The translations under genes were made by a program, and so were the position numbers. The notes under the pieces were generated by a model, which worked only from the letters and a program-made list of their open reading frames with translations, made no database searches and was not told the origin of the DNA. This document shows positions 6,795 through 53,744 of a stretch of 64,000 nucleotides of DNA, piece by piece. Source of the DNA: Macrostomum lignano (Eukaryota); NCBI GenBank assembly GCA_002269645.1, contig NIVC01002923.1, forward strand, positions 1-64,000, read 5' to 3'. How positions within the stretch are numbered: the stretch's first letter is position 1; each line of letters opens with the position of its first letter.

Positions 6795-7445
6795 TTAGCC
6801 GCTGCGCGAATCGCAGGACGCCAGCATTAGCTGATAGACAGTCTCCAATCGCTGGTCCAGCACCGCAGAGAATTCTTTCAACCAAAATGCAGAAGTTTCC
6901 GATTGCCTAGTTGCCAGACTGACCGTTGACATCATAGATGCGATATTACTGTTCACTCTGCCGCTGGCTACATCGCCCCCTGCGCCAACCGTCATTAGTA
7001 AACTAGTATTAGTAGCAGGCTGATTCTGACAATCGGATGTTAGAGTGATAGCTCGCAGCTGGTCTCGCAGGGTATCAGCCATAGACAGTGCGCATTCGTG
7101 CGCGGCTCCGATGATAGAATGCATCCACAGGGCGGCCTCGGTGGCAGACGAGGCGGTCAGATGATAAACGGTTGGAGCGTCCTGATAGGACAGGCAGAAT
7201 GTGGCAGCCTGGTCCCGACTGTCCGACGGTTCAACCATGTGTCCGGCTAGCAGCAGGGCGCCAACCGGCTGATCATCCTGCGGCTTATCCAGGTAGTAGA
7301 GAAAGTTGCCGCACAGTTTGAAATAGTACCGCTTCTCGCTGCCGCCGCCGCTGGCTGTCACTCGCCGCATCCGTAGGTAGCCTTCGCGACTGCATCGACG
7401 GCGCTGACAGAGCCGCTGCAGTGTTTTCTCATTTAGCACTCGCAT
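6795..7445 (-). CDS. PH-domain protein, PLEKHJ1/sesquipedalian-like, single exon, ~216 aa
   Basis: The ATG at 7445 opens MRVLNEKTLQRL, followed by EGYL, KRYYFKLCGNFLYY, QPVGALLL and EAALWMHSI (PH terminal helix Trp). It resembles PLEKHJ1 as I recall it (MRYNEKELQAL...KLVVNFLFYF...EPVGALLL). A pyrimidine-rich AG lies just upstream of the ATG. Confidence 0.8.
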   Translation of the reverse strand: MRVLNEKTLQRLCQRRRCSREGYLRMRRVTASGGGSEKRYYFKLCGNFLYYLDKPQDDQPVGALLLAGHMVEPSDSRDQAATFCLSYQDAPTVYHLTASSATEAALWMHSIIGAAHECALSMADTLRDQLRAITLTSDCQNQPATNTSLLMTVGAGGDVASGRVNSNIASMMSTVSLATRQSETSAFWLKEFSAVLDQRLETVYQLMLASCDSRSG

Positions 7446-7565
7446 GCCGATCGGCCTGACTGGCTGAGAAATAATTAGGGTCACTTGTGTTAGGTGGGCA
7501 TTAAGCAATAGAGCAATGTCGGTAGGAGCTGTCACTCCAGTGCAATATGCTATGGGGCAAGTGGA

Positions 7566-8205
7566 GCTAGGGTAGACGGGCTACAGACTGGGGGTAGACG
7601 GGCTACAGACTGGGGGTAGATGGGGTACAGACTGGGGGTAGATGGGGTACAGACAGACTGGGGTAGACGGGCTACAGACTGGGGGTAGATGGGTACAGAC
7701 TGAGGGTAGTTGGGGTACAGACTGGGGGTAGATGGGGTACAGACAGACTGGGGGTAGATGGGGTACAGACTGGGGGTAGTTGGGGTACAGACTGGGGTAG
7801 ATGGGGTACAGACTGGGGGTAGTTGGGGTACAGACTGGGGGTAGTTGGGGTACAGACTGGGGGTAGTTGGGGTACAGACTGGGGGTAGATGGGGTACAGA
7901 CTGGGGGTAGTTGGGGTACAGACTGGGGGTAGATGGGGTACAGACTGAGGGTAGATGGGGTACAGACTGGGGGTAGATGGGGTACAGACTGGGGGTAGAT
8001 GGGGTACAGACTGGGGGTAGTTGGGGTACAGACTGGGGGTAGATGGGGTACAGACTGAGGGTAGTTGGGGTACAGACTGGGGGTAGATGGGGTACAGACT
8101 GGGGGTAGTTGGGGTACAGACTGGGGGTAGATGGGGTACAGACAGACTGGGGGTAGATGGGGTACAGATTGGGATAAATGGGGTACAGACTGAGGGTAGA
8201 TGGGG
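7566..8205. repeat. 22-bp G-rich minisatellite (cagactgggggtagatggggta)
   Basis: Tandem units lie between the PH gene and the large upstream gene. They explain ORF 7581-8375. Confidence 0.95.
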
Positions 8206-8982
8206 GATGAGAATTGAATGTAATTATAAAAATAAATAAAAGGCATAAAAAGACGCAGAGCTTTAGTGCAATAGCTATATAGAAGTATAAAAAGTGGCAT
8301 ATCTCTAATTATAAACTTCAGCCCAATGAATAAGACACATTTATTGAGACAGAGCAACAGTGTATCGCAGTGCAATAAAAACCTACTGAAAGGAATCGAG
8401 GGGCAAAATAAAAAATAGATAATAATGTTGAAAATACAAATTAGGGTTATTGAAGCCGATTCAAAGTGGGCCTGAAAAATAGGAAAAAATGGTTTCTATA
8501 AAAATAGGATACAACAGCATCCATACGATATGACTATCAAAATTTCGATCATGTTAACACAGCCTTAGTTGCAATGTGACAGAAAAGCTAGTTTTAATCA
8601 ATTATAAGCCTTTAATAGCATGCATGTAGCCTATCAAAGATAGAGATTATATTAAATTAAATCGACATAATCCCCGGAGCGCAACAACGAAGTACGAGCG
8701 TAATGTACGTTTGCTGTGTCCTGACTAAGGTAAAAAACCAGTGTTTTTACTAATAGTAGAGTATTGAATACATTTTAAGCATTTTTCTTATATTTCTACA
8801 ATTAGTAGAAAGTCTATGAGAGCTCATTATATAAATTTCATACGTGTAATATTTGGCTATTTTGCTATTTATACTGTATGTAAAGCGCCACAACGAGAAT
8901 TTCGCGGCGATTTATCTGTTAGAAGGATTAGTCTCCTCTAGGCCTAGGCCTTCTCTAGGCACAATTTAGTCACGCGATACTA

Positions 8983-11900
8983 CTAGGAAGCCAAAGCACC
9001 GGCCCGGTCGGCCAGCCGGCGCTGCTCTGACTCGGCCAGCTCAGCGCAGCAAACGGCTCCGTAGCCGTCTCTAAAGTACACCCGACCAGGAAGCGAGTCC
9101 GGCTCGCAATAGAAACTGTGCGGACCGGCGCCAAGGCCAGGCAGGAAGCTGAGCAGCTGGCCGGACCAATTAAACAGGTACAGCACCTCCTGGCGGAGCG
9201 GCTGCTCATCCGATGCGGCGTCCGATTCGGCGTCGGCATTGCCGAACACCTGGGCTAGGGGAGCGGCGCACACTAGCAAGCCGACATTCGGCACGCATCT
9301 GGCTTCGCGCGCCTGGCCGGGGACAGCGGCAGCGCAGACAACTCGAACTCGATGACCTGCCTCATCGTTAGCAGGCGTATCTAACACGTATACGTTGCCT
9401 TGAACTGACAGGACGGTGCGGAATCCGCTGCCATTGGCTAATGGCTGCTCCTCCAGGGTGCGGTAGCAGCGAATCTCACTCTGGGCCTGCAGGGTCTGGC
9501 CAGCCTGCCAGTTCAGTGCGTGTACGTTTGGCACCTGGCCATGGCAAGGGTGGGGAATTTCTTATATAAGCTGTGCGATTACTAATTACTTATTAATGAG
9601 CACATCGCACTGGAAAAACAGCTCTATAGACCTCTAGTTAATCTCTATAGGCGACAAGCTAATCTCTATAGGCGACAAGCTAATCTCTATAGGCGACAAG
9701 CTAATCTCTATAGGCGATATGCTAATCTCTATAAGCGACAAGCTAATCTCCATAGGCGAGAAGCTAATCTCTATAGGCGACAAGCTAATCTCTATAGGCG
9801 ACGAGCTAATTTCTATAGGCAACGAGCTAATTTCTATAGGCGAGAAGCTAATATTCATAGGTGACAAGCCAATCTCCATAGGCGACAAGCTAAGAATCAC
9901 ACTGCAATAATCTAAATGTTATATTCATTGTTAATCTGATTCTATCTTAAGGTAATTGCTACAAATAAAGACTACTCTAGCTCGAGGTCACTCAGCTCCA
10001 GACTACTCAAGCTAAACAAAACTAAGACAGCCGACGCCCACGCACCGAAGGCACTCGAAATCCATAGAGATCATCTCCAACAGCCTGGTTGCCGCACAGT
10101 TCAACAAAATTTCGACAGTCGTCAGCTATGGGCACGGCATCGAATGTGTCGGGATTCAGCAGAGCCAGCCGATCCGGCAAGAACACAGCCAGAAGGCGAC
10201 CGCAGTCAGTCAGCCACTGGATGCCCAGAATGATGCGAGAATAAGCTAGATTATTGCTAGTAGGAATTTCGTCTTCTGAAGCCGCCGCTGCGTCCACTTT
10301 AGCGACGTCTGTCTTCGTGTCCTCGTCGCTGCCATCTTCGTGTCCACTCTCAGGCGACCAGGTGCAGCGAACCAGTCTGGTAATATCCGGCGTACGCAAC
10401 AGATCCAAGCCTTCAACGGAGAACAATGCGTTGCCTACAATAGCGTGGCCAAACAGCGCCCAGCAGCCGATGCTCCAAGCCTCATCTAGAGCTTGGCGCC
10501 TAGACAAAATTTCAGCCTGCCGTTTTACAACGGCATCCTCGCCAAGGTAGGGACTGGAGAACAGGCGAAGGCCGTCAGAGCTGCAAGCTGTCACAAAGCA
10601 GCGCTGGGATTCGTGATGCCGAACGGCCAAATCCGATTTAAGGAATCTGCGCCTGCCAGCTCTGGGCATGAACGATGTCGAAAGGGATATTGAAGCGCCA
10701 AAGAAATTACTGAGAGACTGATGCCATGAAGCGCTGCATAGTGTCGGATTCTCCGGTGTCATCAAAGCGACGTGCTCGCGCTCGGAGCTGGCAACGAACA
10801 GGCGCGGCCTGCACCCAGTTGAATCCTCATCGGTGCACCTGACGTACACGTGACAGGTGGCTAGGATTGAATCCACTTGAGAATTGATATACGCTTTAGA
10901 CCGGTCACATGGACAGCTGTGATGGTAGTGCAGAATAAAGCCGCTCTGCACAGTGCTGACATCTAGCAGAACTGTCAGCTCCTGCTGCCCGCTGTACACG
11001 TAATCGTCCAGGCGCGGACGGCGACGGCCTCCGCCGGCTTGCCGACCTTTGGATCCTGGCGAACAGGTGGGATTTATAATCTAAATATCTAATTTATAAC
11101 AATATAAAACTTGTAACAAGACTGAGAAAAAGACATGCATAGGCAAGATAGACATTCTGATACAGGTATGTGCACAAAGGTAAACCTGTGGTTGACAATT
11201 CGGCACCTGGCCATTGCAAGACAAAATTAATATAAACATATTGATAGAAATATAGACAGAAATATCTGTAGAGTAAGGCACACCTAGACAGACAGGTGGA
11301 CAAATATAGTTAGACAGACACAAGTTGACAGACATAGGTGGACACAGACGTAGTCAGACACAGCGAGACAGACAAACAGCTAGATAGACACAACTAGACG
11401 GACACAGCTAGACAGACACAGCTGAACACTGAACAGACACACAGCTAGACAGGCACACAGTTAGACAGACACACAGCTAGACAGACACAAAGCTGCATGG
11501 ACAGGCACACAGCTAGACAGGCACACAGCTAGACAGGCACACAGCTAGACAGGCACACAGCTAGACAGGCACACAGCTAGACAGGCACACAGCTAGACAG
11601 GCACACAGTTAGACAGACACAGCTGAACACTGAACAGACACACAGCTAGACAGGCACACAGTTAGACAGACACACAGCTAGACAGACACACAGCTGGACA
11701 GACACACAACTGGACAGGCACACAGCTAGACAGACACACAGCTAGACAGACACAAAGCTGCATGGACAGGCACACAGCTAGACAGACACACAGCTGGACA
11801 GGCACACAGCTAGACAGGCACACAGCTAGACAGGCACACAGCTAGACAGGCACACAGCTGGACAGGCACACAGCTAGACAGACACACAGCTAGACAGGCA

Positions 11901-14900
11901 CACAGCTAGACAGGCACACAGCTAGACAGGCACACAGCTAGACAGGCACACAGCTAGACAGGCACACAGCTGGACAGGCACACAGCTAGACAGGCACACA
12001 GCTAGACAGGCACACAGCTGGACAGGCACACAGCTAGACAGACACACAGCTAGACAGGCACACAGCTAGACAGGCACACAGCTAGACAGGCACACAGCTA
12101 GACAGGCACACAGCTGGACAGGCACACTTAGACAAGCATCCGATCCCATAGAAAGACAAATTCCAGGCACAGACAGGCAAATTCAGAGACAGACATGCAG
12201 GCAGATAAGAGATTCAGACTAGCAATTCGTGTTCAAAATTGCTCATAAACACAAACGAATTGCACTAACCTTCCTTCTTATGCCGCTGCAGTGCAGCGTG
12301 ATAATCTCTAATTTTAAGCACCAGCTCACTGGCAGTTAAAATAGCCTGCCGATGGTACAGAGTGGACAAAGCTTTCTCGGCCGCATCCCACAGGTGCGGA
12401 TTAGCTGAGAATAGTTCAGCCGCCTTCTTTGAGCCCTTAAACAGGCGAGGAGACCGTTTGCGAAGCAATTCAAGATTCTCTTTAAACAGGTGACGCCTAA
12501 TCAGTTTAATAGGCGACTCGCGCCAGACCTCGCCGCTGTCGCTAACAGAGTAGAGCGTATCGAGCCGGCAGCCGTGCTTTAATCTGGCATAGCCCGAATA
12601 GCAGTAGGTGAATTCGCGACCGCAGGGCGCCCGCAGCACCAGCTGCCTGGGCTCGTCCGATTCCAGACGTTTTGACTGAAAAAAACCGCATTGGATTATA
12701 TATCTAGGTATTATGTAAGGTAATGCATTAATTGCAGTTTCTAGCCTATTCTAGCCTAGCCTATTGGTTGCATATCCCATAGCAATCAAAATCATGAGCC
12801 TGTCATATACCATAACAACAAGAATCATTAGCCCGTCCAGTTCCATAGCAACCAGAACCACCAGTCACTCATATCCCATAGAAACCAGAATCTCTAGCCT
12901 GTCCTGTGCCATAGCAACCAGAATCTCTAGCCTGTCCTGTGCCATAGCAACCAGAAGAAACAGCCAGTCCTGTCCCACAGCAACCAGAATCACCAGCTAG
13001 TCCTGTCCTAGGGTGACACTGTTCAGTCCAGCTCATTACCTTGCTGCAATCAGCGCCCACCGGTGGCTCCAACCAGCATGGCGAATCGCTGCTGCCGCCA
13101 CCGCCGCCGCCGTAGCCCTTCAACAACAGTCGGCCAGTCAGGGGTTCCAGACGAATCCTGGGCACCCTGGGGGCCAGCAGTTGCACATCGCCAGTCAGGT
13201 AGCCTTCAGAGTCCAGACGCAGATTAAGCGACTCGCTGCAATCGTCCCCAACCAGCCAGGCAAACTGCTGAGTCTCCTCTGATTCGCGAACAGCCGTAGG
13301 CAGCAGAGGAGCAGACAGACTGCGCCGCCAAGCCAATCGCATCGGAGACGGCAGGCGGCCGTGGAAGCTAATCTGGTCTAGCAGCGGCTGCCAGAGCTGA
13401 GCTGCCAGCTGGCTGACGTCGAGTCCAGGCTGCGGCTCGTTGAACTGATCATTCTCCTCTCGGCCAATCAGAGGCGCCAGCGATCGCAGCAGCCATATGG
13501 CGTCGCGAGCGTAGTCGATGGCGGCCCGGCGCTCGCCTAGGACTGCGTGCAGCATCGACTGGTAGATGCTGGTGAGGTTGGTGAACTCGTGCAGCCTGTC
13601 CAGGTGGACAAGGGTCTCCCGGCACCAGTCAGTCTGGCAGTTGTGGGTAATAAAGTAATTTTGGTTTTTTTCTCTGTATTGCTTCTCGATTCTAAAAAGC
13701 CATTGTGTGACCCAACCTGGCTAGTTTCCTATCTAAAGCTATTGCGTGACCCACCCTGGCTAGTTTCCTATCTAAAGCTATTGCGTGACCCACACTGGCT
13801 AGTTTCCTATCTAAAGCCATTGTGTGACCCAGCCTGGCTAGTTTCCTATCTAAAGCCATTGTGTGACCCACCCTGGCTAGTTTCCTATCTAAAGCCATTG
13901 TGTGACCCACCCTGGCTAGTTTCCTATCTAAAAAGTCATTGTGTGACCCACCCTGGCTAGTTCCCAATCTAAAAAGCCATTGTGTGACCCACCCTGGCTA
14001 GTTTCCTATCTAAAGCCATTGTGGGACCCCCTCGACATTCACAATCTCTAAAGCCATTGTAATCCCGGATATTTCCGAATCTCTAAAAGCCACTATTTAT
14101 GTGAACATTTTAATGCTATAATGCTCTATTTAAAAACACTCACGCCATCACCGCAGTGAACGAATACAAGCGAAATAAGGGCACGCAGGCCGCACTCTAT
14201 CGGCGCAGTCGGTTGCTGAGGCGGCCGCTCCTCGCGTTGCTGTTGCTGCTCCTGCTGGCTGACCCCGGCGCCCGACTGCTCAATCGAAGCGGCGTAGCTA
14301 TCCGCATCCACCTGGCCGTCGGACAGGTTGCCGAGCTGAATAGCCGCCTGAATGGCCTCAGTGTCAATAAACGGTGCCCAAGCTGGCTCACTCGGTCCAG
14401 GCTCCGGTTTCCAGGCGAATCTCTGTGTAAATACTCGCAGCCAGCGTTGCCTAGCAACGGCCCCACACCCGGTTTTGAATTGGCCTTCGTCGAATACGGT
14501 GGCGCACAATGCCAATTGTTGGAAGTGGGCGCCAATGCGGATTAGGCGATCGTCAGCCGGCTCAAAGCTCAGGGAGTCGGACAGCGCGCCAGCAGCCATG
14601 AGTTCGCGAAGGGCCATCAAATAGAAAGATGCGGCATCCTGCGGCATGTCCACCTGGCGATTTCAGGCATATTTTTATTGGTTAAAATTGCAGATTAACT
14701 GCTGTAGAGGGTTCTTTGGCCTAGTGACATCATGTCCTTTGGCTACTAACCTGTCACCCAGTCGCTATTGAGATGTCCTCTAGGTCCAGTGACTACTAGC
14801 CTGTCTTCTAGTCGCTACTAACCAGTCTTCTAGTGGCTACTAACCAGTCTTCTAGTGGCTACTAACCAGTCTTCTAGTCGCTACTAACCAGTCTTCTAGT

Positions 14901-16678
14901 CGCTACTAACCAGTCTTCTAGTCGCTACTAACCAGTCTTCTAGTGGCTACTAACCAGTCTTCTAGTCGCTACTAACCAGTCTTCTAGTCGCTACTAACCA
15001 GTCTTCTGGTCGCTACTAGCCAGTCTTCTAGTCGCTACTAGCCTGTCTTCTAGTGGCTACTAAGCCGTTTCTGGTGGCTACTAACCTGTATTCCACTGAT
15101 TCCACTGGCTATTAACTTGTCTTCCAGTGGCTAAAAACTTTTAAAGTGACTACTAACCTGTCTTCCATTAGCTACTAACCTGTCTTCCATTAGCTACTCA
15201 CCTGTCTTCCATTAGCTACTAACCTGTCTTCCATTAGCTACTAACCTGTCTTCCATTAGCTACTCACCTGTCTTCCATTAGCTACTAACCTGTCTTCCAT
15301 TAGCTACTAACCTGTCTTCCATTAGCTACTAAAATGTCTTAAAGAGGCTATTAACGTGTCTTCCGGGGGCTACTAACCTGTGGTCCACTAGATACTGTCT
15401 TACAGCAGCTACCAATCAGCCCTATTGCACCTCACATGAGTAACTCACCATAGCATACATTCTAGCAACCTCATTCAGCATAGAGGCTCGATCAATACCA
15501 GGCCCTAACAAGTCTGAAGTGGCTAGGAACGCTGAGCAGGCCTCGTCAACAAGGCCTCTAGCCCATAAACAATAGGGCAAGGCGTGCTTTCCGTAGTGAT
15601 TCGCCAGCTCGTGACAAACACCTTCTGATCGGATGCACCTGCGGCGCCAGTTAAACTCCAGAGCAGCCAGACAGGCCAGCGAGGCTATTGGAAAGCAAGA
15701 AAATGCAAGCTTCAACACGTAGTTACTGGTGCAATAAAACCGCGGCTGATGAAAAATAGGCAGGTAGCGGCAGGTGTCGCCGCGCGAGCTCCAAGCCCGC
15801 AGCAGGGCCGGCATACGGTATGCCTCGGCTGCATAGGCGCCCTGCGAGTGAACCACTGTTTCATGCTGACAATTGTAATGCGAGGCGCTGTACAGAGAGC
15901 GGGACAGGAAAATCTCTTCTGCATTACGACCACAGTGACTGCGCAACGCCTGCGCTACGTCAACGTTGCGCATTTGCATCACTTGATTGAGATCCTGGGC
16001 CCGTTCGCGCCACCACTGGCGAGTCAGCTCGCGCAGCCGACGGAGCAGACGCTCTCGTTGAAGTCGGCGAAGCAGCGGCCGCGGCAGCTGAACTGGCCGC
16101 TTCTGACCAGGCCGATTGCTAAGCCGCTGCAGGCAGAGGTCCATCAGAGACAGCGGCGACCACAGGCCGGCCCTGGTCTGCCTGACGTGCAGAAACTTTA
16201 CAGTCAGGCTTGGCTTCGGCGGCGCCGAGTCGACATCGCTGTACGTCACGTGACCAGACCGGACAGAAGCGTCGACGCCATCCGACAATTCGCTGCCAGC
16301 CGCCATTCGGCGATGCTTTTTCTGTCGACGGCTCAGCTTTCTCGGCCGGCCGTCATCTTCGAACAAGTACCAGATGTCGTCGTCATCGGAAATGTCGGTA
16401 GCAGGTGGGGCATCACCTGGTTGATTGTCTTCCTCATCGGCATCGATACAGTCGGCAGCATCCTCCTCTCCTTGGCTGGCATCGCAGTCGTCAGCCTGCG
16501 AATCAGCCGCGGACACGGCCGCCTCCGCCTGCTGCGACAGCACGCGCATCAGCTTGCGCCCGCCGGCGCGATCTAAATTGGCGTAGAATGAAACCAGATA
16601 TTGCACATCCGCATCTTCCTCATTATCATCATTAGCTACTGCGGTGACAGCAGCCAGGGCATCCGGCTGCTGCGACAT
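8983..16678 (-). CDS. Uncharacterised ~1433-aa protein: acidic N-terminus, BC/SOCS-box-like motif, helical middle, probable beta-propeller C-terminus; 6 exons
   Basis: Exons 16678-15449, 14653-14144, 13633-13040, 12675-12270, 11055-10046 and 9534-8983. All junctions are GT-AG with compatible phases (0,0,0,1,0), and 4302 nt gives one open frame. I do not recognise the family. Confidence 0.8.
9640..9895. repeat. 21-bp minisatellite (ctctataggcgacaagctaat), intron 5 of the large gene
   Basis: About 12 tandem units. Confidence 0.95.
11340..12130. repeat. 16-bp minisatellite (gcacacagctagacag), intron 4 of the large gene
   Basis: Long tandem array with variant units. Confidence 0.95.
12855..13005. 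repeat. 33-bp short tandem array, intron 3 of the large gene
   Basis: catagcaaccagaatctctagcctgtcctgtgc repeated about 4-5 times with degeneration. Confidence 0.85.
13695..14030. repeat. 39-bp minisatellite, intron 2 of the large gene
   Basis: aaagccattgtgtgacccaccctggctagtttcctatct repeated about 8 times. Confidence 0.95.
14790..15380. repeat. 22-bp minisatellite with two unit variants, intron 1 of the large gene
   Basis: ctactaaccagtcttctagtcg units are followed by ctactaacctgtcttccattag units. Confidence 0.93.
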
Positions 16679-17333: not shown

Positions 17334-17904
17334 TCTCTATCTAAATATAAAGTCTCAACTCTGTAACTCAATCAGGAATGAAACTGTTAGACAGTTTCTA
17401 ATCTCTCCTTTCTCCTCTTTCATCTCTACTCTTTTATCTTTTCTTTCTTCTCCCTTCTCTATCTTCTATAATTTATTTTACATTCTCTCTCCTTTTCTCT
17501 TTTTCTCTTATCTCTTCTCTTTTATATTTTATCTTATCTCCTTTCAACTCTTATCTAGTTTGTAGCCATGAGCTGGATTCTTTATCTGGCCCTTGGAGAT
17601 AAAAGTCTGCCAGTGCCAACTGCTGCTTCAAAAGCCAGTTCTGGGACATAGTACTCATGGGCCATTCCAAGGGTCATTAGCTAACTGCTTTGATCACATA
17701 ATCTTTCTGGCCAATTTTGAATCCTAAGAAGAATTTGTATATCTAAAGCTCAATTGTAGCCTATTACTCGAAAAAGCATTTGAATGCCAGATTTGAATGC
17801 CAGAAAGATGCAATGTGAGCATTATTCACTTACAATTGATGAGTGGACTGCAATTAACAATAGGCGCTTCATGCATATCAATATTCACACAACTGATAAG
17901 CAAG
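17334..17904 (+). repeat. 571-bp direct repeat copy A (copy B at 25264-25833); ends in a hAT transposase fragment
   Basis: Nearly identical to 25264-25833 from tctctatctaaatataaag to aactgataagcaag, with a few substitutions and about one indel. Confidence 0.95.
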
Positions 17905-18154
17905 CCCAGGCCAGTCTTTTTTCCAGTAAATTTCGAATTCCTACTACGCTATGAATCCCTACCTAAGTAATCCCTACCTAAGTTATCCCAATCCCTATCT
18001 TTATCCATATCCCTATCCCTATCCTTATCCATTTGCCAGTCTATTTTATCCCCCACCCCCATCTACTTGGATGCCTTATCCCAACCCGTTACCCACACCC
18101 CATGCTCCCACCGGCAACCTGGCCAATGCAGCAACAGCAGCAACAGCAAGAGGA

Positions 18155-18266
18155 CCCGCCGGCCTTTACAGCCGACCTGGAGAAGCTTCTCCAGCCCCTA
18201 CTAGGCGCCGCGTCTTCGTCGCGGGGGGGGGGGGAGGTGTCCCTATGGGATATCAAAGAGCGCCTA
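18155..18266 (+). ncRNA. Predicted HDV-like self-cleaving ribozyme at the LINE 5' end
   Basis: P2 uaggcgc (18202-08)/gcgccua (18260-66); P3 cgcg (18209-12)/cgcg (18220-23); L3 ucuucgu; G-run 18224-34 supplies P1 3' strand and P1.1; P4 gugucc c/gggauau (18237-53); J4/2 C18254-aaaga. The P1 5' strand is ambiguous (cccctac 18195-18201 or cccgcc 18155-60). Folded by eye only. Confidence 0.65.
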
Positions 18267-19263
18267 AACCTTGGACACCCTGTGTCCCATCGGCTAGAAG
18301 AAGTTTGTGTCAACGGAAGCTGCAGCCCGCCGATGGCTTCCCGGCGGTCAAGGGTGGCAGTTGGGCCCACCACCTTCCCAAGCTGCGCTTATTCAGGGCC
18401 GGCAACATTGAAACCAACCCAGGACCCCCCGTCACACTATGGCAAGGCCTGCTGCGGCAAGCCGCTCCGTGACAGGGCGCTGGTCTGTCGGCAATGCAAC
18501 CGCGGTTTTCATCTCCAAAGAATCTGCTCTGGGTTGAGCCGTTGGGCCTCGGACCGCGCCGTGCGCGAGAACACCTGGACTTGTTCCGACTGCTCACGTG
18601 GGCCAGTCTCATCCCCGGAGCCACCGGGACAAGACACCGAGGCCACTGCTCAGCAAGGCACTCCTGTCCAGGCGGAGTCACCGGCCGAGGATCGGAGACT
18701 CACCCTGCTTGCGAGGATCAAAGAAGAAAAGCCTAACTGCGCCAAGTGCAAGAAGACCATCCTGGTGTCGACGGTGATTGCCTGCTGTAACACCTGTGAG
18801 GCCTTTTTCCACAATGCATGCACCGAAGCCACCAGAGAACAGATTAAGCAAGAAGTCCGCAGGGGCCGCTGGCGGTGTCGTTTCTGTACCGAAGCCCTCA
18901 CTACCAGTGGAGCTACGCATTCCTCGCCAGAAGCCGACCCCACGGCCCACAACGAAACGCACCGCGGACGGAAAGAAGGACCTGCCAATAACAAGGGCCT
19001 CAAGGTCCTGCAATGGAATGCGGACGGCATCCGAAACAAAATGGGAGAACTGGAGGAGCTGGTCCAACGCCTCAAAGTTGATGTTGTCATGATCCAAGAA
19101 TCTAAGCTTGACTAAGTCTCCCGCACGCCAAAGATCCCCGGCTTTACCACCGTGAGAAAAGACCGACGAACGCTACGTTCCAGCGAGACGTACAAGGGAG
19201 GAGGTCTCCTCACGCTCATCCGCCAAGAAATCCCCTTCCGGCGGCTCAAAGGCTGGAGTGGAG

Positions 19264-19549
19264 CATACATGCGCAACAGTCGGCCGATCGGGCCGACCGA
19301 TTTGGCGGCCAACCAAGGAAGTCGCAAAAATGCCCACCCGAAAAAACACCAAGTAGTAGTACTAAGTAGCTGACGAGGCATTTTGGCTTTATAAGACTGT
19401 TAAGTTACTCCTGCCGTTTACCCAAAGTTGCGTTAATTTTGCTTTCGGGTTTTTTACATGTAAGTCGCATTTTTGGCCAAAAACTACGTCGCATTTTTGT
19501 TAAAACTAAGTCGCACGGCCGACCGAATTTTGGAGGTTGCGCATGTATG
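19264..19549. mobile_element. 286-bp hAT-type MITE inserted in the LINE endonuclease
   Basis: Perfect 14-bp TIR catacatgcgcaac/gttgcgcatgtatg and 8-bp TSD gagtggag (19256-63, 19550-57). Removing it restores RRLKGWSGGTVEGCRIV. Confidence 0.95.
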
Positions 19550-22502
19550 GAGTGGAGGCACGGTGGAAGGCTGCCGCATCGTGATCAACCTTAGTGTCAA
19601 AAAGCGTCTCGTGCTCACTAACATTTACCGGCCGCCCATCAGGCGCAATGCTGGCGCCGACTGCCGGGAGCACCCGGACATCGATCTCTGGCTGAAGCCG
19701 CACCAGCGCGAGATTATTGCTGGCGACTTTAATCTCCATCACACGACCTGGGGTAGTCTGCCTGGCCAGGGGCCCGAGGGCGCCGAACAAGCCAAAGCCC
19801 TGCTGGAGTGGTGTGACAGTAGTGGGTATTGTGTCCTCAACTCGGGCTCCCTCACCTGTCTCGATCGCCGCGACGGTCTCGATCGCCGCGATGGTGGAGA
19901 GAGTGCCCCCGACATCAGCCTCGCTAGCGCCGGCCTCGACGACCTCTGCTCGTGATAGGCCCTTGACGAACTGGGCTCTGACCACAAACCCATTCTCATC
20001 ACTGTGGATAGCGACCGCGCTAGCACCGACCAGAAGATTTGTCTCACCTGGGCCTGGCAGAAAGCTGACTGGAACAGCTACCAGGCCCAGCTCGAAGACG
20101 ATAGCATTGGGCTCAACAAAGGCACTGTCAAGCAGCAAATCCAATGCCTCTGCTTTCGTATGAGTAAGGCGGCCAAAGCTTGCATTCTTCAGACTGCAGG
20201 CCTTCTTCAGACACCTGCTGGACTCGTGGCTCACAGCCTGGCTCACGGTCTTTAATCGGTGCTGGTCCCTAGGGCACTGCCCGGAAGTCTGGAAGAAGGC
20301 GGTGATCGTCCCACTTTTGAAAAAGGGCAAAGACCCAGCCAACTGCAGCAGCTTCCGGCCTGTTAGTCTCACTTCCATCTGTGTTCAAATCATGGAGCGC
20401 ATTGTGATGGACCGGCTCATGCACTGGATCGAACTCAACAACACGCTGCAACCGTGGCAAGCTGGTTTTCAGAGAGGGCATAGCTGCGAAGAACAAGTGG
20501 CGCGTCTGGTCCAGGAAATCCAAGACCTCCTTGCCCGTATCATGGATGAGGGAGTCCCGGGTCGCATGGTGCACTGGTCTGCCAGCTTCCTGGAGGGGCG
20601 CCAGATTGCCGTCCGCGTGGGCGACACGATCGGCAAATGGAAGCCGCTTAAGGAGGGGGTGCCGCAGGGGGCAGTGTGCTCGCCGGTGCTCTTCCTCCTG
20701 TACATTAACGACTGGGCAGACTCCCTGGTCCCAGATGTCAACTACGCCGGCTTTGCTGACGACCTGGGCGTCTGGGCCTTGGGCAGCAACACCCAGCAGA
20801 TTGCGGAGCGCCTTCAACTGGCCATCGATCGCATCGACGCCTGGGCCACAGATCTCCGTATCGATCTCAATCCCCTCAAAATTGAATGCTGTATCTTCTC
20901 GAGAGACCGCAGGGACCGCGACCATACCCTCAACCTGTGCATCCGAGGCCAGCAACTCCCAACCAGGCAGGAGCTGCGCTACCTGGGTGTCTGGATCGAC
21001 AGCGGCCTGCTCTTCAAGCGGCAGTCCGACGAAGTTGCCACCAAACTGCGCCGTCGTTGTGCTGTCCTGCGTGCACTGTCGCATCGCGAATGGGGGTGGG
21101 ACCGCGCCACGCTTAGGACGGTGTATAAAGCCGTGGTGGAGTCTGTGGTTTGGCATGCGGCTGCAGCCTGGATGCCCTGGCTCTCTCAGACTCGCCTCAA
21201 TGACCTGGACAAAGCCCAAAAAGTCGCTCTGAGTCTTGTCTCTGGTCTACCAAGCTCGACTTCTAGCGTGGCCATCTACCGTGAGGCCGATTGTGTGCCC
21301 ATCAGCCTGGAGGCCAAACGACGAGCGCTGGTCACCGTCGAAAAGGCGCTCCGGCGGCCCGAGGCGGACCCCTGGAGGTCCAGGTATGAACTCAGGACCC
21401 CCACCCGGCTCAAAGCCAACCGTGGCCTCCGCGAACAAGCCCACTCAGTGCTCAACGAGATCCTCCCACATAGCCGTCTCCCGGGAGCCTGGGTCAGAGC
21501 CCCGCCGTGGGACACACTCAGCGGCTCGGACTGGCTGAGGCTCTATCCGCAACTGGTGAGACCGCTCCGTAAAACCGACAGTCAGCACACCCACGATCCG
21601 ATCATCGCCGACACCTTCCGAGAACGCCTGCCCAGTACCTGCTACTTCACGGACGGCTCCGCTTCGGGTGGCACCGCCAACGGCCAACGGTGTCGCCGCC
21701 TGGATTCTGTTTGACCAGGAGATGGGCACGATCATCCGGGGCGGCCACTCTGCAGCGGGCAGATAGTGCAGCTCCTTCGAAACCGAGCTCCGCGCGCTCC
21801 GAGATGCCGTCGTGGATGTCATCCAGCAGGACGTTGACACCGCCGCCTTCTCACCGATAGCCAGGCGGCCGTCAGAGCACTGATAGCCGACCGGCCCACC
21901 ACTAACGCGCTACTCAAAGACCTGAAGGCCCTTCTTCGGCAAGCAGCTGGCCGTTACGTTCTCACGATCCAGTGGATTCCCGGCCATGCTGGCGTGGCTG
22001 GTAACGAGTTCGTCGATCGCGAGGCCAAAGCCGCAGCTCTTCTGGATCAAGCCCAAGTGGCCATCTCGCTCGAAGCAGCCAAGCGGTTTATCTACCGCCG
22101 TCTCGAGTACCTTCCGGACCTGACCGGCCATCTGAAGGAGACTTACCAAGGACGCATCACGCACCATAACGGCAGCCGGCGTGAGCAAGTCCTCGTTGCG
22201 CAGGTGAGAGCTGGACACTGCCCCTCCTCGGCCTACTACGCTAAGCGCATCGGCAAAGCTCAGCTGGCCGAGTGCAGGCTTTGGGGGCTCGAGGTAGACC
22301 AATTCCACCTGGTCCACTGCCCTGCGATCGATGTCGCCCGAAGACAGAACAGCATTTGCAATCTGAAAGACCTAGCCGATGGAAACCTGGTGGCGCGGCT
22401 CCTGGAGTGGATCGACTGGACCCCGCTCTAGACGGCTGCACTCCGCACTCAACAACAACAACAACAACAACAACAGCAAGAGGAGCAACAACAGCAACAG
22501 CA

Positions 22503-23339
22503 GAGCGGTTCTCAAAGACGGCAGCGGAGGGGCTGGCATCATCATAGACAAGGTCACGCCGCCGCTCACTGCTGCGCTCTCTGACAATATCACCACGCTG
22601 CGCATTCCAGCGGGGCGGCCCTGCTCATCGACCGCTGCCGAGCTAGTCGCCCTGCTGGCGGCTATTGACTGGCTGTGCAAACTGGACGAACCATGGCACC
22701 ACGCCCGCATAGCCACTGACAGCCGCAGCGCGCTGCAAGCCATCACAGGCGAATCCCGGTTGCCGGCCGCCATTAACATCCGGCACCTGCTGGCACACCT
22801 CGGGGAGTGCGGCCGCAAGGTGGCTATGATCTGGATACCGGCTCACTGCGGCCTCCCCGGAAACGAAGCAGCTGATAAGGCAGCTGGTGAAGCCGCAACC
22901 ATGCCACAGGACAACATGCCGGTTGGCGCCAGCATCACGAGTAGAGTCCTCCGGAGGCAACTACCGAGAAGGTTCACGCACGACCGGAGCCGCAGGTCTA
23001 CGGCAGGGAAGCCAGGGTGCAGCGAGCGAGCTTCGGAAATTGTACCGAAGCGCTAAGCCTGCGCCGCTTCCGCTCCGGCCACTCGATCCAACTTCAAGCT
23101 TACAACCTGCGCATCGGACGCGCCGACGACGGGCTGTGTCAGGCCTGCAAACTGGAGCCGGAAACGGTCGACCACCTCTGCGACTGCCCGGCCACCTGGA
23201 CGCGCAGGCAGCAGCTCGGTATTGGCGACGCCGCCGACTTGTGGGCCAAGGAGCCAAGCGCGCTTGCTTACTGGAATTGGTTCCTCACCAGATTCGCGGA
23301 ACGTTAGACTGCACCGGTGGCATATACACACACGCACAC
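22503..23339 (+). mobile_element. 5'-truncated Ingi-like LINE of a second family (RNase H + C-terminal zinc finger)
   Basis: It starts inside RNase H (AVLKDGSGGAG...AELVAL...TDSRSAL...WIPAHCGLPGNEAADKAA) and contains CQACKLEPETVDHLCDC. Stop at 23307, (CA)n tail, TSD acagcaacagca at 22491-22502 and 23340-23351. Confidence 0.9.
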
Positions 23340-25263
23340 ACAGCAACAGCAACAACAACAACCGCAACAGCAGCAGCATCAACTGCAGCTACACTCGCGT
23401 TCGGCGCGGACTAGATTTGTGAGAGATGAAATGCGCGCACGTAAGTTTATTGTATTACGAGTTTGTTTAGAGGGATAGTTTTGACTAAATCAGTTTTTGT
23501 TTGACCACTCATTTCGTGTGAAATGAATATATGTTACAAAACTATTATGCTTTCTTTTCACAGTTGGACTCTGCCGATTCTGCCTGCGGCGCGGCCACAT
23601 AGCGGCAGACTGCAGAAATCTCTGTTGCCACCACAGCCACAGCCGCAGCCGCAGCTGCAGCACTGTTGTTGACGTTGAAGAATGAAGCATTGAATTAAGA
23701 ATTTTTTAATTTCTGTGCTGCTTAGCTATTTGACTAAGTCTGTTCTCTGTCTGTCATCTATTTAAGATGAAAATTAAAACTATGACTAAAATGCTGAATT
23801 AGAAGCACTAGGCAAATTTAAGTAGCTAATCATTTTTGCTGCAAAGAGGCTCTTTGCCTTATGATAAATCCATTTTAATACGAGTCTTTTTTGCTTTTTT
23901 TGGTTCATCAAACACAAAGGAGCCACAATGTCATACATTAAAGAGGCACCATGTAAAACAAAAGAGCTGCCATGTCAAACACTAGAGGCTCCATGTCAAA
24001 CACTAAAGAGCCACCATGTCAAACACAAAGGAGCCACCATGTTGTACATAAAACAGCCACCATGTCAAACATAAACATGTCAAAACAGATAATTAAATAT
24101 AATAAATCACAAAAATAATTAAATGTATATAAATTGTGCAATGGGCTATATTGTTGGTAAGCCTTCTGCAAGAACACCATACTCGTACAAGGCATATGTG
24201 CAAAGAAATATTGTGCTAAAATATTCAGAGTTGTTTTATTGGTCAATGTACAAAACTAATTTAACAAAATTCACTCTTTATTTCGGCCTTTGTTCACAAG
24301 AATTCTATTTATTTATTGACCAAAAATATACATTTACTATATTATATATAAAAAACTGCTAAAATTTACTTTTTTGTTTCTCATGGATTTTTTGTGTTAA
24401 TAATAAAATATAAAATATAATAAAATACACCAATTAATATTTTTTTGCTGCTACACATTTTTGAAATTATAAAACCAATAAAAGATTACAGTCAACAGTG
24501 GGAAATAATTGAGGCCCTTTTAAGTCCTTTATTGCTGATATCAGATTTTGTATGAGTTGCAGTCACCACTGAATTTAGCTACTAGGTTCATGCATTATTA
24601 ACCTGACATAAAATGGAGATTTGATGTAAGGTGAAAGAAACTTTAAAGAGTTTTATGCATATGCATTAAATCAAGATTCAAGAATCAATATCTATTTGTT
24701 GTCGCCATTGTAATTTTTCATAAAATCTGTTTCAAGGACCACTGGAGTACAAAATATTGTTCATTTTAGTACACATCATGCAGTTTATTCTATATGTATA
24801 GTTATGGTAGGGCATTAATATATTAAACAACAATTTTCAGCGCAAATTAAATTCAATGCAAGTTGTCATTAACCAATGTGTATGTAAAAAAATTGACTAA
24901 TCTCTAGGTTACTATTTAAAAAATGACTTAACTGACCATGTTTTCTCTTTTCATAGATAAACTTTTCTTTCTATGTGGCAAGTCTACTTATCTTTGTTTA
25001 AATACTTAACACTGCATTCGTTTGGATGTTACATTGTGTTGTACAAATGTGCATGAAATGTGTAATTTTTATGCTATATAATTCTAATAAAAAAATCTCA
25101 AAGAGATTATAGCAACCAAATAACCTTTTGTGAGTATAGAAAAGATTTGTATATTACATTTTCCTCAACATATTTAATATGTAACAATAAGAAAACTTAA
25201 TAAAACTGTTTCAATTTGTCTCTTGCTTATTTGGCACCCCAAAGGGTGGGCATAGATTGCTAG

Positions 25264-25833
25264 TCTCTATCTAAATATAAAGTCTCAACTCTGTAACTCA
25301 ATCAGGAATGAAACTGTTAGACAGTTTCTAATCTCTCCTTTCTCTTCTTTCATCTCTACTCTTTTATTTTTTCTTTCTTCTCCCTTCTCTATCTTCTATA
25401 ATTTATTTTACATTCTCTCTCCTTTTCTCTTTTTCTCTTATCTCTCCTCTTTTATCTTTTATCTTATCTCCTTTCAACTCTTATCTAGTTTGTAGCCATG
25501 AGCTGGATTCGTTATCTGGCCCTTGAGATAAAAGTCTGCCAGTGCCAACTGCTGCTTCAAAAGCCAGTTCTGGGACATAGTACTCATGGGCCATTCCAAG
25601 GGCCATTTGCTAACTGCTTTGATCATATAATCTTTCTGGCCAATTTTGAATCCTAAGAAGAATTTGTATATCTAAAGCTCAATTGTAGCCTATTACTCTA
25701 AAAAGCATTTGAATGTCAGATTTGAATGCCAGAAAGATGCAATGTGAGCATTATTCACTTACAATTGATGAGTGGACTGCAATTAACAATAGGCGCTTCA
25801 TGAATATCAATATTCACACAACTGATAAGCAAG
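25264..25833 (+). repeat. 570-bp direct repeat copy B
   Basis: Matches 17334-17904 and continues directly into the hAT transposase remnant. Confidence 0.95.
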
Positions 25834-27445
25834 TTTATCATCTTGTACTAATTTGTATCAAAGGTTTAATGATTGCAGAAATCTGTATGCTACTTGTGCG
25901 AACTCGACTTCAGGAATTTGGAAGTGTATAATATAGAGCACGACATAGTTGTTGCCACAACTGATGGCGCTTCTATAATAGTCAAATTTGCTAAGTTGCT
26001 TAATGTTGAACATCAGATATGCCATGCTAATGGTATACATCTGGCTACCTGCAATATCCTTTATGCAAGAAATGCTGCAGATACTAGCAATGATATTTTT
26101 TCTGCAAATGAGAATGTTGCTGCAGTTGCAGACTTCACCAATGATGATTTTGAGCAAGGTGCTAGTGAAGATGAAGAAACTGACACTGATGAGACTGTCA
26201 ACCAGAATGTACAAGACAATGGTGATGATGTCCAATTAGATTATGCCATTGATCAAGTTTTTCAGCAAATAAGAAAGTGCATTTGCATGTTTTAACAAGC
26301 CCCAGTCCAAAATGACACCTGCAGATGTTTGTCCAGGAGGAACTTGGACGGCCACTATGCCTATTACTCAATGTAAAAACACACTAGAATTTGTTATTAA
26401 TAATAGTTGATTGGTTCGTATTGCTACTAAAGCCTCTTCAGAGCACTATGTTGCACTTTGGCATTAAAGCATGATTCAACTGAAGTGACATTGAATGATT
26501 GAGGCAACTGAGTGCCCACTGAAGCCATTGGAACTTGAAGTTCATCAGGGCACTTTCTCAACGAGACTGCACACTCATTCAGGCAGATGCCTCCATCAAT
26601 TATGCCATCTCAGAGCTATGATAACAGGGAACTAGTCTGTCCATTTGTTTGCTGGAAGCATTGCACAATTGTTTTTACAACATCGAAGTAGCACCATGTT
26701 GGCTGCACAGTTTCCTCATTGAAATGGCAGAGTCAGAAGTGTAGCTAAACTGAATGCAGCAAAGTACACACTTGTTTCAATTGCTGAAAGACTTGGTCTG
26801 CTTCAGGACAATGTTGAAGCACAATAGGTCGAGAACTAACCTGATGTAAAATTATATAAAAATTATATAGTTTGTATATTACTATTTTAGTATACTATTA
26901 TGGACATTTATTCAAGCATACAAACCTTAGAGATTTAGTATATTTAGAAGTATAGCAACAGTATAAAAAGTAGGCATTTCTTTTTAACCTTTTTGCATCT
27001 ACTGACAGAGCCATCTCAATGGAGGAGCAGTTTGAAGTTGCACTTCGAAATTGCGCAGTGAGTTAAAAGCTGACAATTGTCCCAATACTGATGTCAAGCG
27101 CGTGATTGGCTGCAAAATAGATTTTTTGCGTACCACTGGCCAGTGTGGCAGTGCTTGACAGGCTTTATACTGCCTTGCGCTCTATTCTACCTACTAGCCT
27201 TGACGCCAAATGTGCCTTCTCTGCAAGTGGCATGCTACTGACAAAGCTAAGCTCACGCATGGCAGACACAATGCTCTCAAAATTGTGTTTGCTGCAGTTT
27301 TACTTTTAAAATAACTAACTAACTTTTGACACTTTTGACATACTTTTGACATTGACATACTTTTGACATACTTTTGACTTTTGACATTTGACATACTTTT
27401 GACTTTTGACATTTGACATGACAGATACTTTTGACATTATTCAAT
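25690..27445 (+). mobile_element. Decayed hAT DNA transposon (transposase pseudogene plus 3' subterminal repeats)
   Basis: YSLTIDEWTAINNRRFMNINIH (first catalytic D), VATTDGAS (second D), HQICHANGIHLA (CxxH), and dimerisation domain SILPTSLDAKCAFSASGMLLTKLSSRMAD...LCLLQFYF* ending ~27310. It has multiple frameshifts and stops and a probable intron ~26830-27010. tttgacat repeats occur at 27325-27440. Confidence 0.88.
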
Positions 27446-35189: not shown

Positions 35190-38100
35190 ATGGGCAACGC
35201 CCTCCGCTGCTGGCCATGCCGCTCCAAAGCCAAGCAGGGCCCGGCAACCCGGCTTATAGTGCCAAACTTCAAGTTCGAAGACTGGCCAGATAGCGACAAT
35301 CCTAATAAGCGATTCGCCAACAATTGCATTAAGACTACAAAGTACAGCCTGTTGACTTTTCTGCCATTAAATTTGTGGGAGCAGTTCCACAGGTTCGCCA
35401 ATATTTACTTTGTATTTATTGTGGTGCTAAACTTCATGCCCGAAGTGTCGGCATTCGCCAAAGAGCTGTCGCCCATACCGGTAGTATTCGTGCTGGCTGT
35501 CACAGCCGTCAAAGACGCCTTCGAGAACTACAGGCGCTACCGGTCTGATCAGCGCATCAATCACAGCCGCTGCCAGGTGTACAGGCGCTCTGTGCGCGAC
35601 TACGTGCCAGACGAGTGGCGCCGCCTCTGGCCAGGCGATATTGTAAAGCTGAGAGCTAACGATGTCATACCGGCCGATATTTTGTTGCTGCACAGCTCGG
35701 ATCCGGCTGGCCTGTGCTACATTGAGACCTGCAATATCGATGGCGAGACCAATTTGAAACAGAGACACGTCATGCGCGGCCTGAAGGTGCGTTGTTGGCC
35801 GAGGAGTCGGGAAAGATATGCTTAGTATTGAAATCAATTGGGCTCCGGGTTTTTGCGTCACAAGCTCTAATCAGCAAGATGTTAAAATTTGTATAAAAGT
35901 TCAATCTTGAGAAGAAATTTTAAGCCTGTAAAGTTTCGAATCTGACTATAACTTTGTTTACTATTACTATTTTATTGGAAATAGTTTCCAGTTTTCGATC
36001 TGTGTGTGTGTGCAGTCTGAATCAAAAGTTCAAATGCGGATTGGAAAATCTCACAGGAGGGCCCTGGGGCGAAGCAATTCTGCTCATTCCGCTGACTCCT
36101 GAGTACATGCAAGCGCGCCAATACTGTACGTAAGCACACACAGCTCACACAGGGTGTACAGCGGCCCTGGCCATCGCATGTACACTCTGTACTTTAGGGG
36201 GGTTGGCCCTCACCCTCATGGGTGTGAAGTGTACGACAACCCTTAGTCAATTTTCATGCACAAGCCCCAGTTTATGTCAATGTGGCCGCGCACGGAATCA
36301 AACCAAGGACTACTCAAGTAGGAGGACGCACGGAATCAAACCAAGGACTACTCAAGTAGGAGGATGCACGGAATCAAACCAAGGACTACTCAAGTATGCG
36401 TACATTCCCTGTACCTAAAATCATAAAAATGCGTGGCACAGCTCGACTCTAGTTTCACGAATCTATTTTATCATCTCTTACGCATATTGTTACACAGTCA
36501 GTGAGTCAGTTGAGCCATGTTAACGGTTTTTAGGCACAGGACATGTGCAATTGTACGTAGAATAAAAAATTAGCATAGAACCCTAATTTTCTGAACGAAA
36601 AGCTTTATGAATATCAATACAGCTATAAGAAAGGCACAACATATCAAAAGATGAGCATTGGGTCTGCCTCCTATCGAAAGCAATAACAACTTTTGTGCTG
36701 AAAAATGAAAGCTTCCTATCTCCGTAGTGTATTTTGCGGCGTAAACCAGCCTGGAGCCTCCTTAACATTTTCTAATAAGCTTAGTTTCTCGTCCTCCGAC
36801 TTGAGCAGTCCTTGAATCGAATACTGGGGTCTGGGGCGCGCAAGTCAGAAGCGTTTACCGCTAAACTGGCATGTCCAAATGATTTTGGCAAATAGGTTTG
36901 GTTTATTATTTAAAACGCAAGTTATCCGACGGAATGCTTGGCTCTGTGTGAATTTAGACTTTATTTCAGTTGAATCTTCTAGCACGAACTATTTGCGGTG
37001 TTGCAGCGCTTATTTAATACGTTTAATTGGTTAAGGTGTATTCAATATTGGTGCGTTTTGTAGTTATATCAATTTTATTTCTTTAATTAATAGTCCCAGG
37101 CTGTTACTGCGCAATAGTAAATTATTATTATTTCCTATTTCCAGCCATGTTCACTTGCAACTTTAAGCAATTTAGCTGAATGCAGGTATTGCCGTTGGGT
37201 AAATCTTAAACCATAAATAATGCATTAGATGCCAAATGCATTTTTAACCCTGCAATAATCCACTCTACTAAAATTTAAATTTCTTAACTAAGTAATCTTT
37301 TTTCTTAAATTTACTTAGTAAGAACCGAAAATTCGTAGGATAATAATCCTAGGAATTTTTAAATTGCTACTAGCCTTAATTTTACTCACATTTTGCTACT
37401 TTGTATGAACTTTGCTGTGATTAGCTCAACTTATTTGATTTTTAATACATCAGTAGCTTCTACCCTTGCATCGGTGCAACCTGAGGTCATTGAGCAGCTT
37501 CTACCCTTGCATCGGTGGTGCAACCTGAGGTCATTGAGCAGCTTCTACCCTTGCATCGGTGCAACCTGAGGTCATTGAGCAGCTTCTACCCTTGCATCGG
37601 TGCAACCTGAGGTCATTGAGTGGCTTCTACCCTTGCATTTGTGCAACCTGAGGTCATTGAGCAGCTTCTACCCTTGCATCGGTGGTGCAACCTGAGGTCA
37701 TTGAGCAGCTTCTACCCTTGCATCGGTGCAACCTGAGGTCATTGAGCAGCTTCTACCCTTGCATCGGTGCAACCTGAGGTCATTGAGTCAGTATTCGTGA
37801 GACTATTTTTGTATTTTCAGATGCAAGGGTGATCTTTAAAAAATCACCAATCAGAAGCTTAGTAGTAGCTTTATATTAAAGCTAATCATTTAATTATAAC
37901 TTCTGCATTAAAATGAGTTTTTTTCTAGTTGCTAAAACCAGAGCCTTGTGTTGCTTTGAATCGCTAAAAATGTCGTCCCGGTCCTGTTTTTTTCAGCATT
38001 CACTGGCAGGGGTAAAACTGCTATATTGTTTATCTTGAAGAGTTCAGTTCATTAATTTGCAGTTTACTTTTTACACTGTTTATTTAACGAGAGTTCAATA

Positions 38101-39733: not shown

Positions 39734-39767
<34 letters not shown>

Positions 39768-39830
39768 CCTGCCTGTCTGTCTGTCCGTCTGTCTGTCTGT
39801 CTGTCTGTCTGTCGGTCTGTCTGTCTGTCG

Positions 39831-39900
<70 letters not shown>

Positions 39901-53628: not shown

Positions 53629-53744
53629 CGGCTGACTGGCTGATTTGAGAGCTTGATTGATTCATTCATTAACTAAAGTGTTATTAAATCAACCGATACT
53701 TTAGCTAAATGGCTTTCACTTCTAAGTAGCTGCTCGACTGTCTC

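Follow-up and report, generated by a model that had tools for sequence, protein, structure and literature searches.

Two LINE insertions in one CAG/CAA microsatellite, and a possible zinc-knuckle coding relic at the same site

Microsatellites are an established class of target for long interspersed nuclear elements (LINEs) (PMC4640811), and pairing between the 3′ tail of the element and its target during target-primed reverse transcription is reviewed in the same paper, citing Kojima and Fujiwara 2004. In single-open-reading-frame, non-long-terminal-repeat retrotransposons of the AP-endonuclease (APE) type, a 2A-like motif, PHD fingers and the endonuclease follow each other in this order (Odon et al. 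2013, PMC3708506). We report here on a locus of contig NIVC01002923.1 (assembly GCA_002269645.1) where two LINEs, called LINE1 and LINE2, lie in one tract of CAG and CAA units, next to a short sequence with a CCHC zinc knuckle. The window analysed was the whole of positions 1 to 64,000 of this contig, forward strand (64 kb). An initial annotation had read the locus as a hidden gene for a polyglutamine (polyQ) and zinc-knuckle protein, knocked out by the two LINEs. Two separate LINE insertions with target-site duplications (TSDs) were indeed found, but a working gene was not demonstrated, and the interrupted sequence may rather be a coding relic.

Two LINEs in a single CAR tract

The repeat unit, CAG or CAA, is written CAR below. 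From left to right, the locus consists of the following parts.

17951 to 18127, plus strand: open reading frame (ORF) rich in tyrosine and proline (MNPYLSNPYLSYPNPYLYPYPYPYPYP...), a simple tandem repeat (Tandem Repeats Finder) that is out of the polyQ frame
18126 to 18154, plus strand: ATG and 5′ part of the (CAR)n tract, its last 14 bp (18141 to 18154) being copy 1 of the LINE1 TSD
18155 to 22470, plus strand: LINE1, near full-length and decayed (Pfam; tblastn with relatives)
LINE1, 5′ part: 5′ untranslated region (UTR), ATG at 18245, 2A-like GNIETNPGP at 18401 to 18427, PHD fingers
LINE1, middle: AP-endonuclease at 18828 to 20186, reverse transcriptase (RT) at about 20320 to 20997, RNase H
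LINE1, 3′ part: C-terminal Cys/His motif, stop codon at 22429 to 22431, (CAA)n tail at 22450 to 22470
19264 to 19549, unstranded: miniature inverted-repeat transposable element (MITE) of 286 bp, inside the LINE1 endonuclease domain, with 14-bp terminal inverted repeats (TIRs) CATACATGCGCAAC and GTTGCGCATGTATG and an 8-bp TSD, GAGTGGAG
22471 to 22502, plus strand: host CAR tract separating the LINEs, with copy 2 of the LINE1 TSD (22471 to 22484) and copy 1 of the LINE2 TSD (22492 to 22502)
22503 to 23340, plus strand: LINE2, 5′-truncated and of another family (Pfam RNase_H, 4.4e-9)
23341 to 23440, plus strand: copy 2 of the LINE2 TSD (23341 to 23351), remainder of the CAR tract, and 64 nt of complex sequence (HQLQLHSRSARTRFVRDEMRA) up to the splice donor; GC 0.54
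23441 to 23563, plus strand: intron-like, phase-preserving segment of 123 nt, GTAAGT...CTTTCTTTTCACAG; GC 0.29
23564 to 23685, plus strand: second exon, with the knuckle CRFCLRRGHIAADC (23572 to 23613), a Cys/His/Ser/Arg tail and a TGA at 23683 to 23685 (pattern and Pfam)

All runs of at least five CAR units, on both strands of the 64 kb, were at this single locus. The only LINE-like DNA in the window, probed with 73 RT relatives, was found between 18828 and 23271, and both of the window's sole two LINEs lie in its only CAR tract, 32 bp apart. LINE1 is bounded by a perfect 14-bp TSD, CAACAGCAAGAGGA, and LINE2 by a perfect 11-bp TSD, CAGCAACAGCA. Their amino-acid identity to each other is only 31 to 33%, which places them in different families. 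Taken together, the pair displays the duplications, the simple-repeat tail ((CAA)7 in LINE1) and the 5′ truncation (LINE2) of LINE insertions. The identities, boundaries, TSDs and tails of the two elements are directly observed, and this part of the finding is solid and ordinary: a known architecture and a known behaviour, insertion in a matching microsatellite.

In LINE1, Pfam matches were obtained for PHD (1.8e-6), Exo_endo_phos_2 (6.3e-9) and RVT_1 (3.6e-21), while RNase H was supported by alignment to RNase-H-bearing relatives through 22380. AP-endonuclease, reverse transcriptase and RNase H therefore come in the order of an APE-type LINE, the RNase_H Pfam match itself being on the LINE2 ORF. 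RNase H is a feature of the I/Ingi group of LINEs. The best named relative of the LINE1 RT is 56% identical (Macrostomum lignano). The putative 2A motif shares its frame with the ATG at 18245, from which a leader of 52 codons runs into RLFRAGNIETNPGP and then into the PHD fingers; its first residue is N where the canonical one is D, and it is recognised as 2A by motif only. Its position agrees with that reported by Odon et al. 2013 (PMC3708506). This LINE1 copy is dead. At least 7 disabling lesions were counted: a frameshift directly after the 2A motif, stop codons at 19113, 19953, 19956, 21712 and 21835, a frame change at about 20186 to 20200, and the MITE insertion. The MITE holds a 22-bp tandem repeat (19461 to 19515), and no second copy of its 286 bp was found in the window.

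The ATG of the polyQ sequence was considered as the start of LINE1 and rejected, as the 14-bp TSD sets the boundary of the element at 18155 and its own ATG, at 18245, is in the 2A frame. An ORF of 360 codons (18033 to 19115) nevertheless spans the host ATG and polyQ sequence, crosses the LINE1 junction and enters the PHD and endonuclease region. It is a fortuitous fusion frame, because the TSD fixes the boundary and the LINE coding frame at that place is the other one; an ORF caller would list a single protein there.

In LINE2, RNase H (about 22517 to 22897) and the C-terminal Cys/His motif are retained, the 3′ end is rich in CA, and there is one frameshift near 23011. In the LINE2 relative P0010 the tail is not readable, since the contig stops 18 nt past the stop codon. 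Some of the apparent polyQ codons that follow LINE2, up to about 6, may belong to the LINE tail and not to the host, which leaves the frame unchanged.

A reason for the sharing of one tract may be found in the 3′ ends of LINE1 relatives. All 3 relatives with a readable 3′ end (L001, L002 and L003, respectively 43%, 41% and about 44% identical to LINE1) have a (CAA)n after a short 3′ UTR, at 2655 to 2690, 3459 to 3476 and 4175 to 4198. They come from two metagenome assemblies and one run assembly, L003 having been found by a locus search with a 3-sequence alignment. This suggests, from sequence comparison, a conserved 3′ end for the LINE1 clade. The junction ...ccgcag|caacaa is common to two of the three.

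An imperfect (CAG/CAA)n microsatellite of about 75 to 80 nt received two independent LINE insertions. In the mechanism that we propose, the (CAA)n tail of the LINE1 RNA would pair with the nicked TTG/CTG strand during target-primed reverse transcription, and such pairing would favour insertion in the tract, leaving the 14-bp and 11-bp TSDs. The double insertion would thus have occurred because the CAA tail of the LINE RNA pairs with the CAR target, and this is probably the simplest mechanism to bring both LINEs to one site. Two observations weigh against it. No long CAR tract comes after the tails of L001 and L003, meaning that the clade is not strictly CAR-specific; and the 3′ end of LINE2 is CA-rich, so that its tail is inseparable from the target repeat. 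With two insertions in one window, CAR targeting looks like a preference via microhomology and not like strict site specificity.

The reconstructed empty site and its zinc knuckle

The empty site was rebuilt by a script removing 18155 to 22484 and 22503 to 23351. The result reads CCA ATG, then Q7 EE Q9 P Q4, and goes on in frame as H Q L Q L H S R S A R T R F V R D E M R A. Excision of 23441 to 23563 (GTAAGT...TTTTCACAG) then leads, in the same phase, into LGLCRFCLRRGHIAADCRNLCCHHSHSRSRSCSTVVDVEE and to the stop codon. The initial annotation had described this same polyQ frame up to FVRDEMRA, and a canonical intron joining it in phase to a C-x2-C-x4-H-x4-C knuckle; both were reproduced. The Tyr/Pro ORF that it had placed behind a splice acceptor is present as well, starting at 17951 after cttttttccag (17917 to 17927), in a frame that differs from that of the polyQ ATG. 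The empty site can thus be read in frame up to a CCHC knuckle of retroviral type, the intron on the way being canonical and of distinct composition, but the openness of the frame across the CAR repeat is uninformative. CAG/CAA repeats are stop-free in every forward frame, and for this reason an open frame across them is no evidence of a gene.

The knuckle and the intron are the parts that point to a coding origin. Zinc-ligand spacing is exactly C-x2-C-x4-H-x4-C in the knuckle. Bare patterns of this spacing are expected 0.16 times per window, CCHC with Gly before His was obtained in none of 200 composition-matched simulations, and the degenerate-codon knuckle pattern in none of 100 shuffles. 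An exhaustive search with the contiguous exon-2 peptide against 1.84 billion proteins gave 18 matches with E<=1e-3, all of them aligned over the knuckle (residues 2-19, reaching 28 at most). Five of these 18 were read and are multi-knuckle proteins, among which P0075 shares the GHIAADC core. Relative to C-x2-C-G-x2-G-H, which we take to be the consensus, partly from the matches of this search, Gly-His is kept and Leu stands after the second Cys. The closest matches by sequence in the PDB were retroviral nucleocapsid knuckles, at non-significant E values of 0.3 to 1.5.

The 123-nt segment begins with GTAAGT, ends with a pyrimidine tract and CAG, and keeps the phase, which gives it the splice signals of an intron. 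Its GC content is 0.29, against 0.54 and 0.59 in its flanks. Only two candidates in the window, over both strands, have GT-AG signals together with a GC contrast, and this segment was the better of the two. GC content drops again to 0.29 directly past the stop codon. Like the knuckle motif, these signals are direct observations. A minus-strand model, in which the sequence would belong to upstream RhoGAP exons, was tried and rejected, GT-AG splice signals being found on the plus strand only.

Evidence for a demonstrated gene, on the other hand, fell short at several points. According to Tandem Repeats Finder, the Tyr/Pro part is made of a 15-bp unit repeated 2.4 times (17954 to 17989) and of TATCCC repeated 7.8 times (17984 to 18030), the polyQ part is an imperfect CAR microsatellite, and the C-terminal Cys/His/Ser/Arg tail is a CCACAG/CAGCCG repeat. 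This leaves about 45 residues of complex sequence outside repeats. The knuckle scored 15.3 bits with Pfam zf-CCHC (E=0.022), below the gathering cut-off of 20.8 bits, and the PDB matches were those just mentioned. For a codon-usage score, 2,475 codons were taken as training set from long ORFs in the window, part of which carry host domains confirmed by Pfam (GC content at third codon positions, GC3, of 0.65). The proposed frame obtained a log-likelihood ratio of −2.1, and two other frames +6.0 and +9.4, in a test of low power over about 60 codons; the score of the Tyr/Pro ORF was negative in all three frames. The six frames of GC-rich segments are, moreover, largely open.

Homologues were sought with the 61-aa non-repeat part in a word-indexed search of 5.8 billion proteins, and with the degenerate-codon knuckle pattern in metagenome contigs; no match was found in either. 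Beyond generic knuckle repeats, no homologue was found in the 5.8 billion and 1.84 billion proteins, where the source organism's own proteins are not represented. The one intron of the neighbouring P4-ATPase gene that was read (about 48036 to 48993) is long and minisatellite-filled, unlike the 123-nt AT-rich intron.

Origin of the island

We give an even chance to the reading of the island as a relic of coding sequence, which may be an orphan pseudogene or else a gene fragment, duplicated or of Gag origin. The only complex sequence of the island would then be a two-exon fragment, of 64 nt and 122 nt, carrying one retroviral-type CCHC knuckle, with an apparently genuine spliceosomal intron between its exons. 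A coding origin is probable on the strength of the knuckle and of the intron. Two points nevertheless go against stopping at a relic. The ATG, the open frame, the phase-preserving intron, the four zinc ligands and the stop codon at a GC/AT boundary have together the look of a small real gene. In addition, as the source organism is absent from the protein database, the lack of homologues is weak evidence on paralogues or alleles within its own genome.

A functional small gene for a low-complexity protein rich in Tyr, Pro and Gln with one CCHC knuckle, of host or Gag origin and inactivated by both LINEs, would account for the in-frame reconstruction with its ATG and stop, for the canonical, phase-preserving intron of distinct composition and for a knuckle beyond chance, and in its high GC content the island is like the host exons of the window. 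We nevertheless hold it unlikely. The Tyr/Pro ORF and the polyQ ATG do not share a frame; tandem repeats make up the polyQ, Tyr/Pro and C-terminal parts; the low-power codon-usage test lends this reading no weight; the Pfam score is sub-threshold, with Leu for the usual Gly past the second Cys; neither orthologue nor paralogue was found among the 5.8 billion and 1.84 billion proteins searched or among metagenome contigs; and the P4-ATPase intron that was read is of another kind. A more specific version is improbable in our estimate. In it, an orphan gene restricted to this lineage would encode a prion-like RNA-binding protein, rich in Y, P and Q and with one knuckle; the gene may have come from Gag and acquired its intron. 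The present haplotype would carry a null allele of it, made by the LINEs in the polyQ-coding repeat, CAA-tailed LINEs then preferring polyQ-coding CAG/CAA tracts in genes. At the opposite extreme, the island may never have been a gene, the knuckle and the AT-rich GT-AG segment being coincidences in GC-rich simple-sequence DNA. The expectation of 0.16 bare CCHC spacings per window, the largely open six frames, the lack of a homologue and the fact that the feature came from a post-hoc search all fit coincidence. It becomes quite unlikely once the Gly-His form of the knuckle is considered, which none of the 200 simulations produced, as GHIAADC-type knuckles recur in real proteins and the edges of the intron are also edges of composition.

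Transposable elements offer two further explanations. The knuckle could be a fossil of a Gag or ORF1 protein, from an element with long terminal repeats (LTRs) or from another LINE, and the apparent intron an unrelated AT-rich insertion. The RA-GLC-x2-C...GH context does resemble the nucleocapsid of RSV (PDB E 0.3 to 1.5, not significant), one of the five exhaustive-search matches read, P0080, is Gag-like, by eye only, and the neighbourhood is rich in transposable elements. The flanks outside both LINEs, however, have no homology to gag, protease, RT or integrase, and the 123-nt segment has strong splice signals and neither TIR nor TSD of its own, so that we regard this origin as quite unlikely. 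Alternatively, the CAR tract itself may be the 3′ tail of an earlier, extremely 5′-truncated CAA-tailed LINE or short interspersed nuclear element (SINE), in a chain of tail-into-tail insertions where polyQ was never coding. The clade does have (CAA)n tails, and caccgg...gcag|caa, just before the tract, is loosely like the 3′ UTR of L002, but this resemblance covers about 6 nt only. There is no LINE homology upstream of 18828 with the 73 relatives, on which ground this explanation was rejected as the principal one; no stop codon or C-terminal motif was seen ahead of the tract, and Rfam and tRNA scans returned no credible tRNA or SINE-like RNA. We consider it very improbable. The coding relic is thus the reading we retain for the island, beside the two LINE insertions.

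As it stands, the locus is a textbook nested insertion of transposable elements, with a microsatellite that received two LINEs, one of which in turn received a MITE, and it shows how simple repeats can imitate a hidden gene after in-silico removal of insertions. Should the genome contain, at another place, an intact copy that is expressed, the locus would be a documented case of an orphan zinc-knuckle gene with a LINE-made null allele. An attraction of CAA-tailed LINEs to polyQ-coding repeats would then be hinted at as well, which is a modest point on insertion bias into coding microsatellites.

Surroundings, and comparison with described systems

The locus is a small GC-rich island in an AT-rich gap (16.7 to 35 kb, GC about 0.30) between two genes. 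The flanking repeats and the neighbours are listed here.

2787 to 16678, minus strand: RhoGAP and PH-domain gene
17334 to 17904, plus strand: direct repeat A1, a copy of the start of a hAT-like pseudogene, including ...TIDEWTAINNRRFMHINIHTTDKQ (97.9% identity over 571 bp)
25264 to 25833, plus strand: direct repeat A2, running on into the rest of the hAT-like pseudogene (alignment with A1; translation)
25713 to 27290, plus strand: remnant of a hAT-like transposase, decayed by many stops and frameshifts (three-frame translation)
35190 to 49646, plus strand: P4-type phospholipid flippase gene (PhoLip_ATPase_N, Cation_ATPase, PhoLip_ATPase_C)
Minisatellite arrays, first part: 2797-3589, 7567-8205, 11276-12138, 13696-14060, 14735-15419
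Minisatellite arrays, second part: 40406-42700, 44881-45731, 46445-46903, 48334-48833, 50634-51909
Minisatellite arrays, third part: 53722-54486, 56252-56836, 58240-59084, 60686-61240, 63584-64000

Repeats A1 and A2 bracket the whole locus; the start of the transposase-like ORF is in both, its continuation in A2 only. The remnant at 25713 to 27290 carries motifs that we take to be of hAT type, and its only Pfam match was DUF659, at E=0.008, below the cut-off. The proposal that the island was cargo of a hAT-flanked segment is weak and was not supported: the flanks are 571-bp direct repeats, no TIR or inverted copy of the repeat end was found in the window, and the DUF659 match is sub-threshold. 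Domains above threshold, TIRs and an 8-bp TSD, by which a hAT element is recognised, were not found together at these flanks. The 571-bp repeats were also rejected as LTRs or hAT termini, as they have no TG start and CA end and no inverted copy, and A2 continues into transposase-like sequence. Segmental duplication or patchwork repair is as good a guess for their origin.

For the P4-ATPase exon, the best database identity was 41 to 49% (animals, a chytrid fungus, a ciliate). Because the identity is at most at this level, the organism of this flippase has no close sequenced relative in the collections searched. About 220 bp downstream of the stop codon of the knuckle exon lies, within AT-rich DNA, a 23-bp tandem repeat, TCAAACACAAAAGAGCCACCATG, in 7.5 copies (23908 to 24075). 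Minisatellite arrays of high GC content are unusually frequent in the window; their lengths go from a few hundred bp to 2.3 kb, and many of them lie within or between the RhoGAP and P4-ATPase exons. Arrays 53722-54486 and 56252-56836 are 93 to 95% alike, and array 11276-12138 resembles 39630-39942, on the opposite strand, at about 72%. A 295-bp direct repeat of 94% identity (43764 to 44058 and 52465 to 52750, 8.7 kb apart) was noted in the region of the flippase gene.

Three described systems are close to this locus. The knuckle differs from the zf-CCHC family (PF00098, as in retroviral nucleocapsid and CNBP-like proteins) in being single, in its Leu for the usual Gly past the second Cys and in the lack of similarity beyond the knuckle; it is alike in ligand spacing, in the Gly before His and in the GHIAADC core, as in P0075. 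Compared to the 2A/PHD single-ORF LINEs (PMC3708506), to which it is likened by architecture, LINE1 is a dead copy with N for D as the first motif residue; what it shares with them is a short leader followed, all in the same direction, by GNIETNPGP, PHD, AP-endonuclease, RT and RNase H, as well as a TSD and a simple-repeat tail. Compared to the microsatellite-targeting LINEs (PMC4640811), the preference is seen here in one window only, and two of the relatives, L001 and L003, have no long CAR tract downstream. The likeness is that both LINEs of the window lie in its only CAR tract, and that LINE1 and its three relatives all carry (CAA)n tails.

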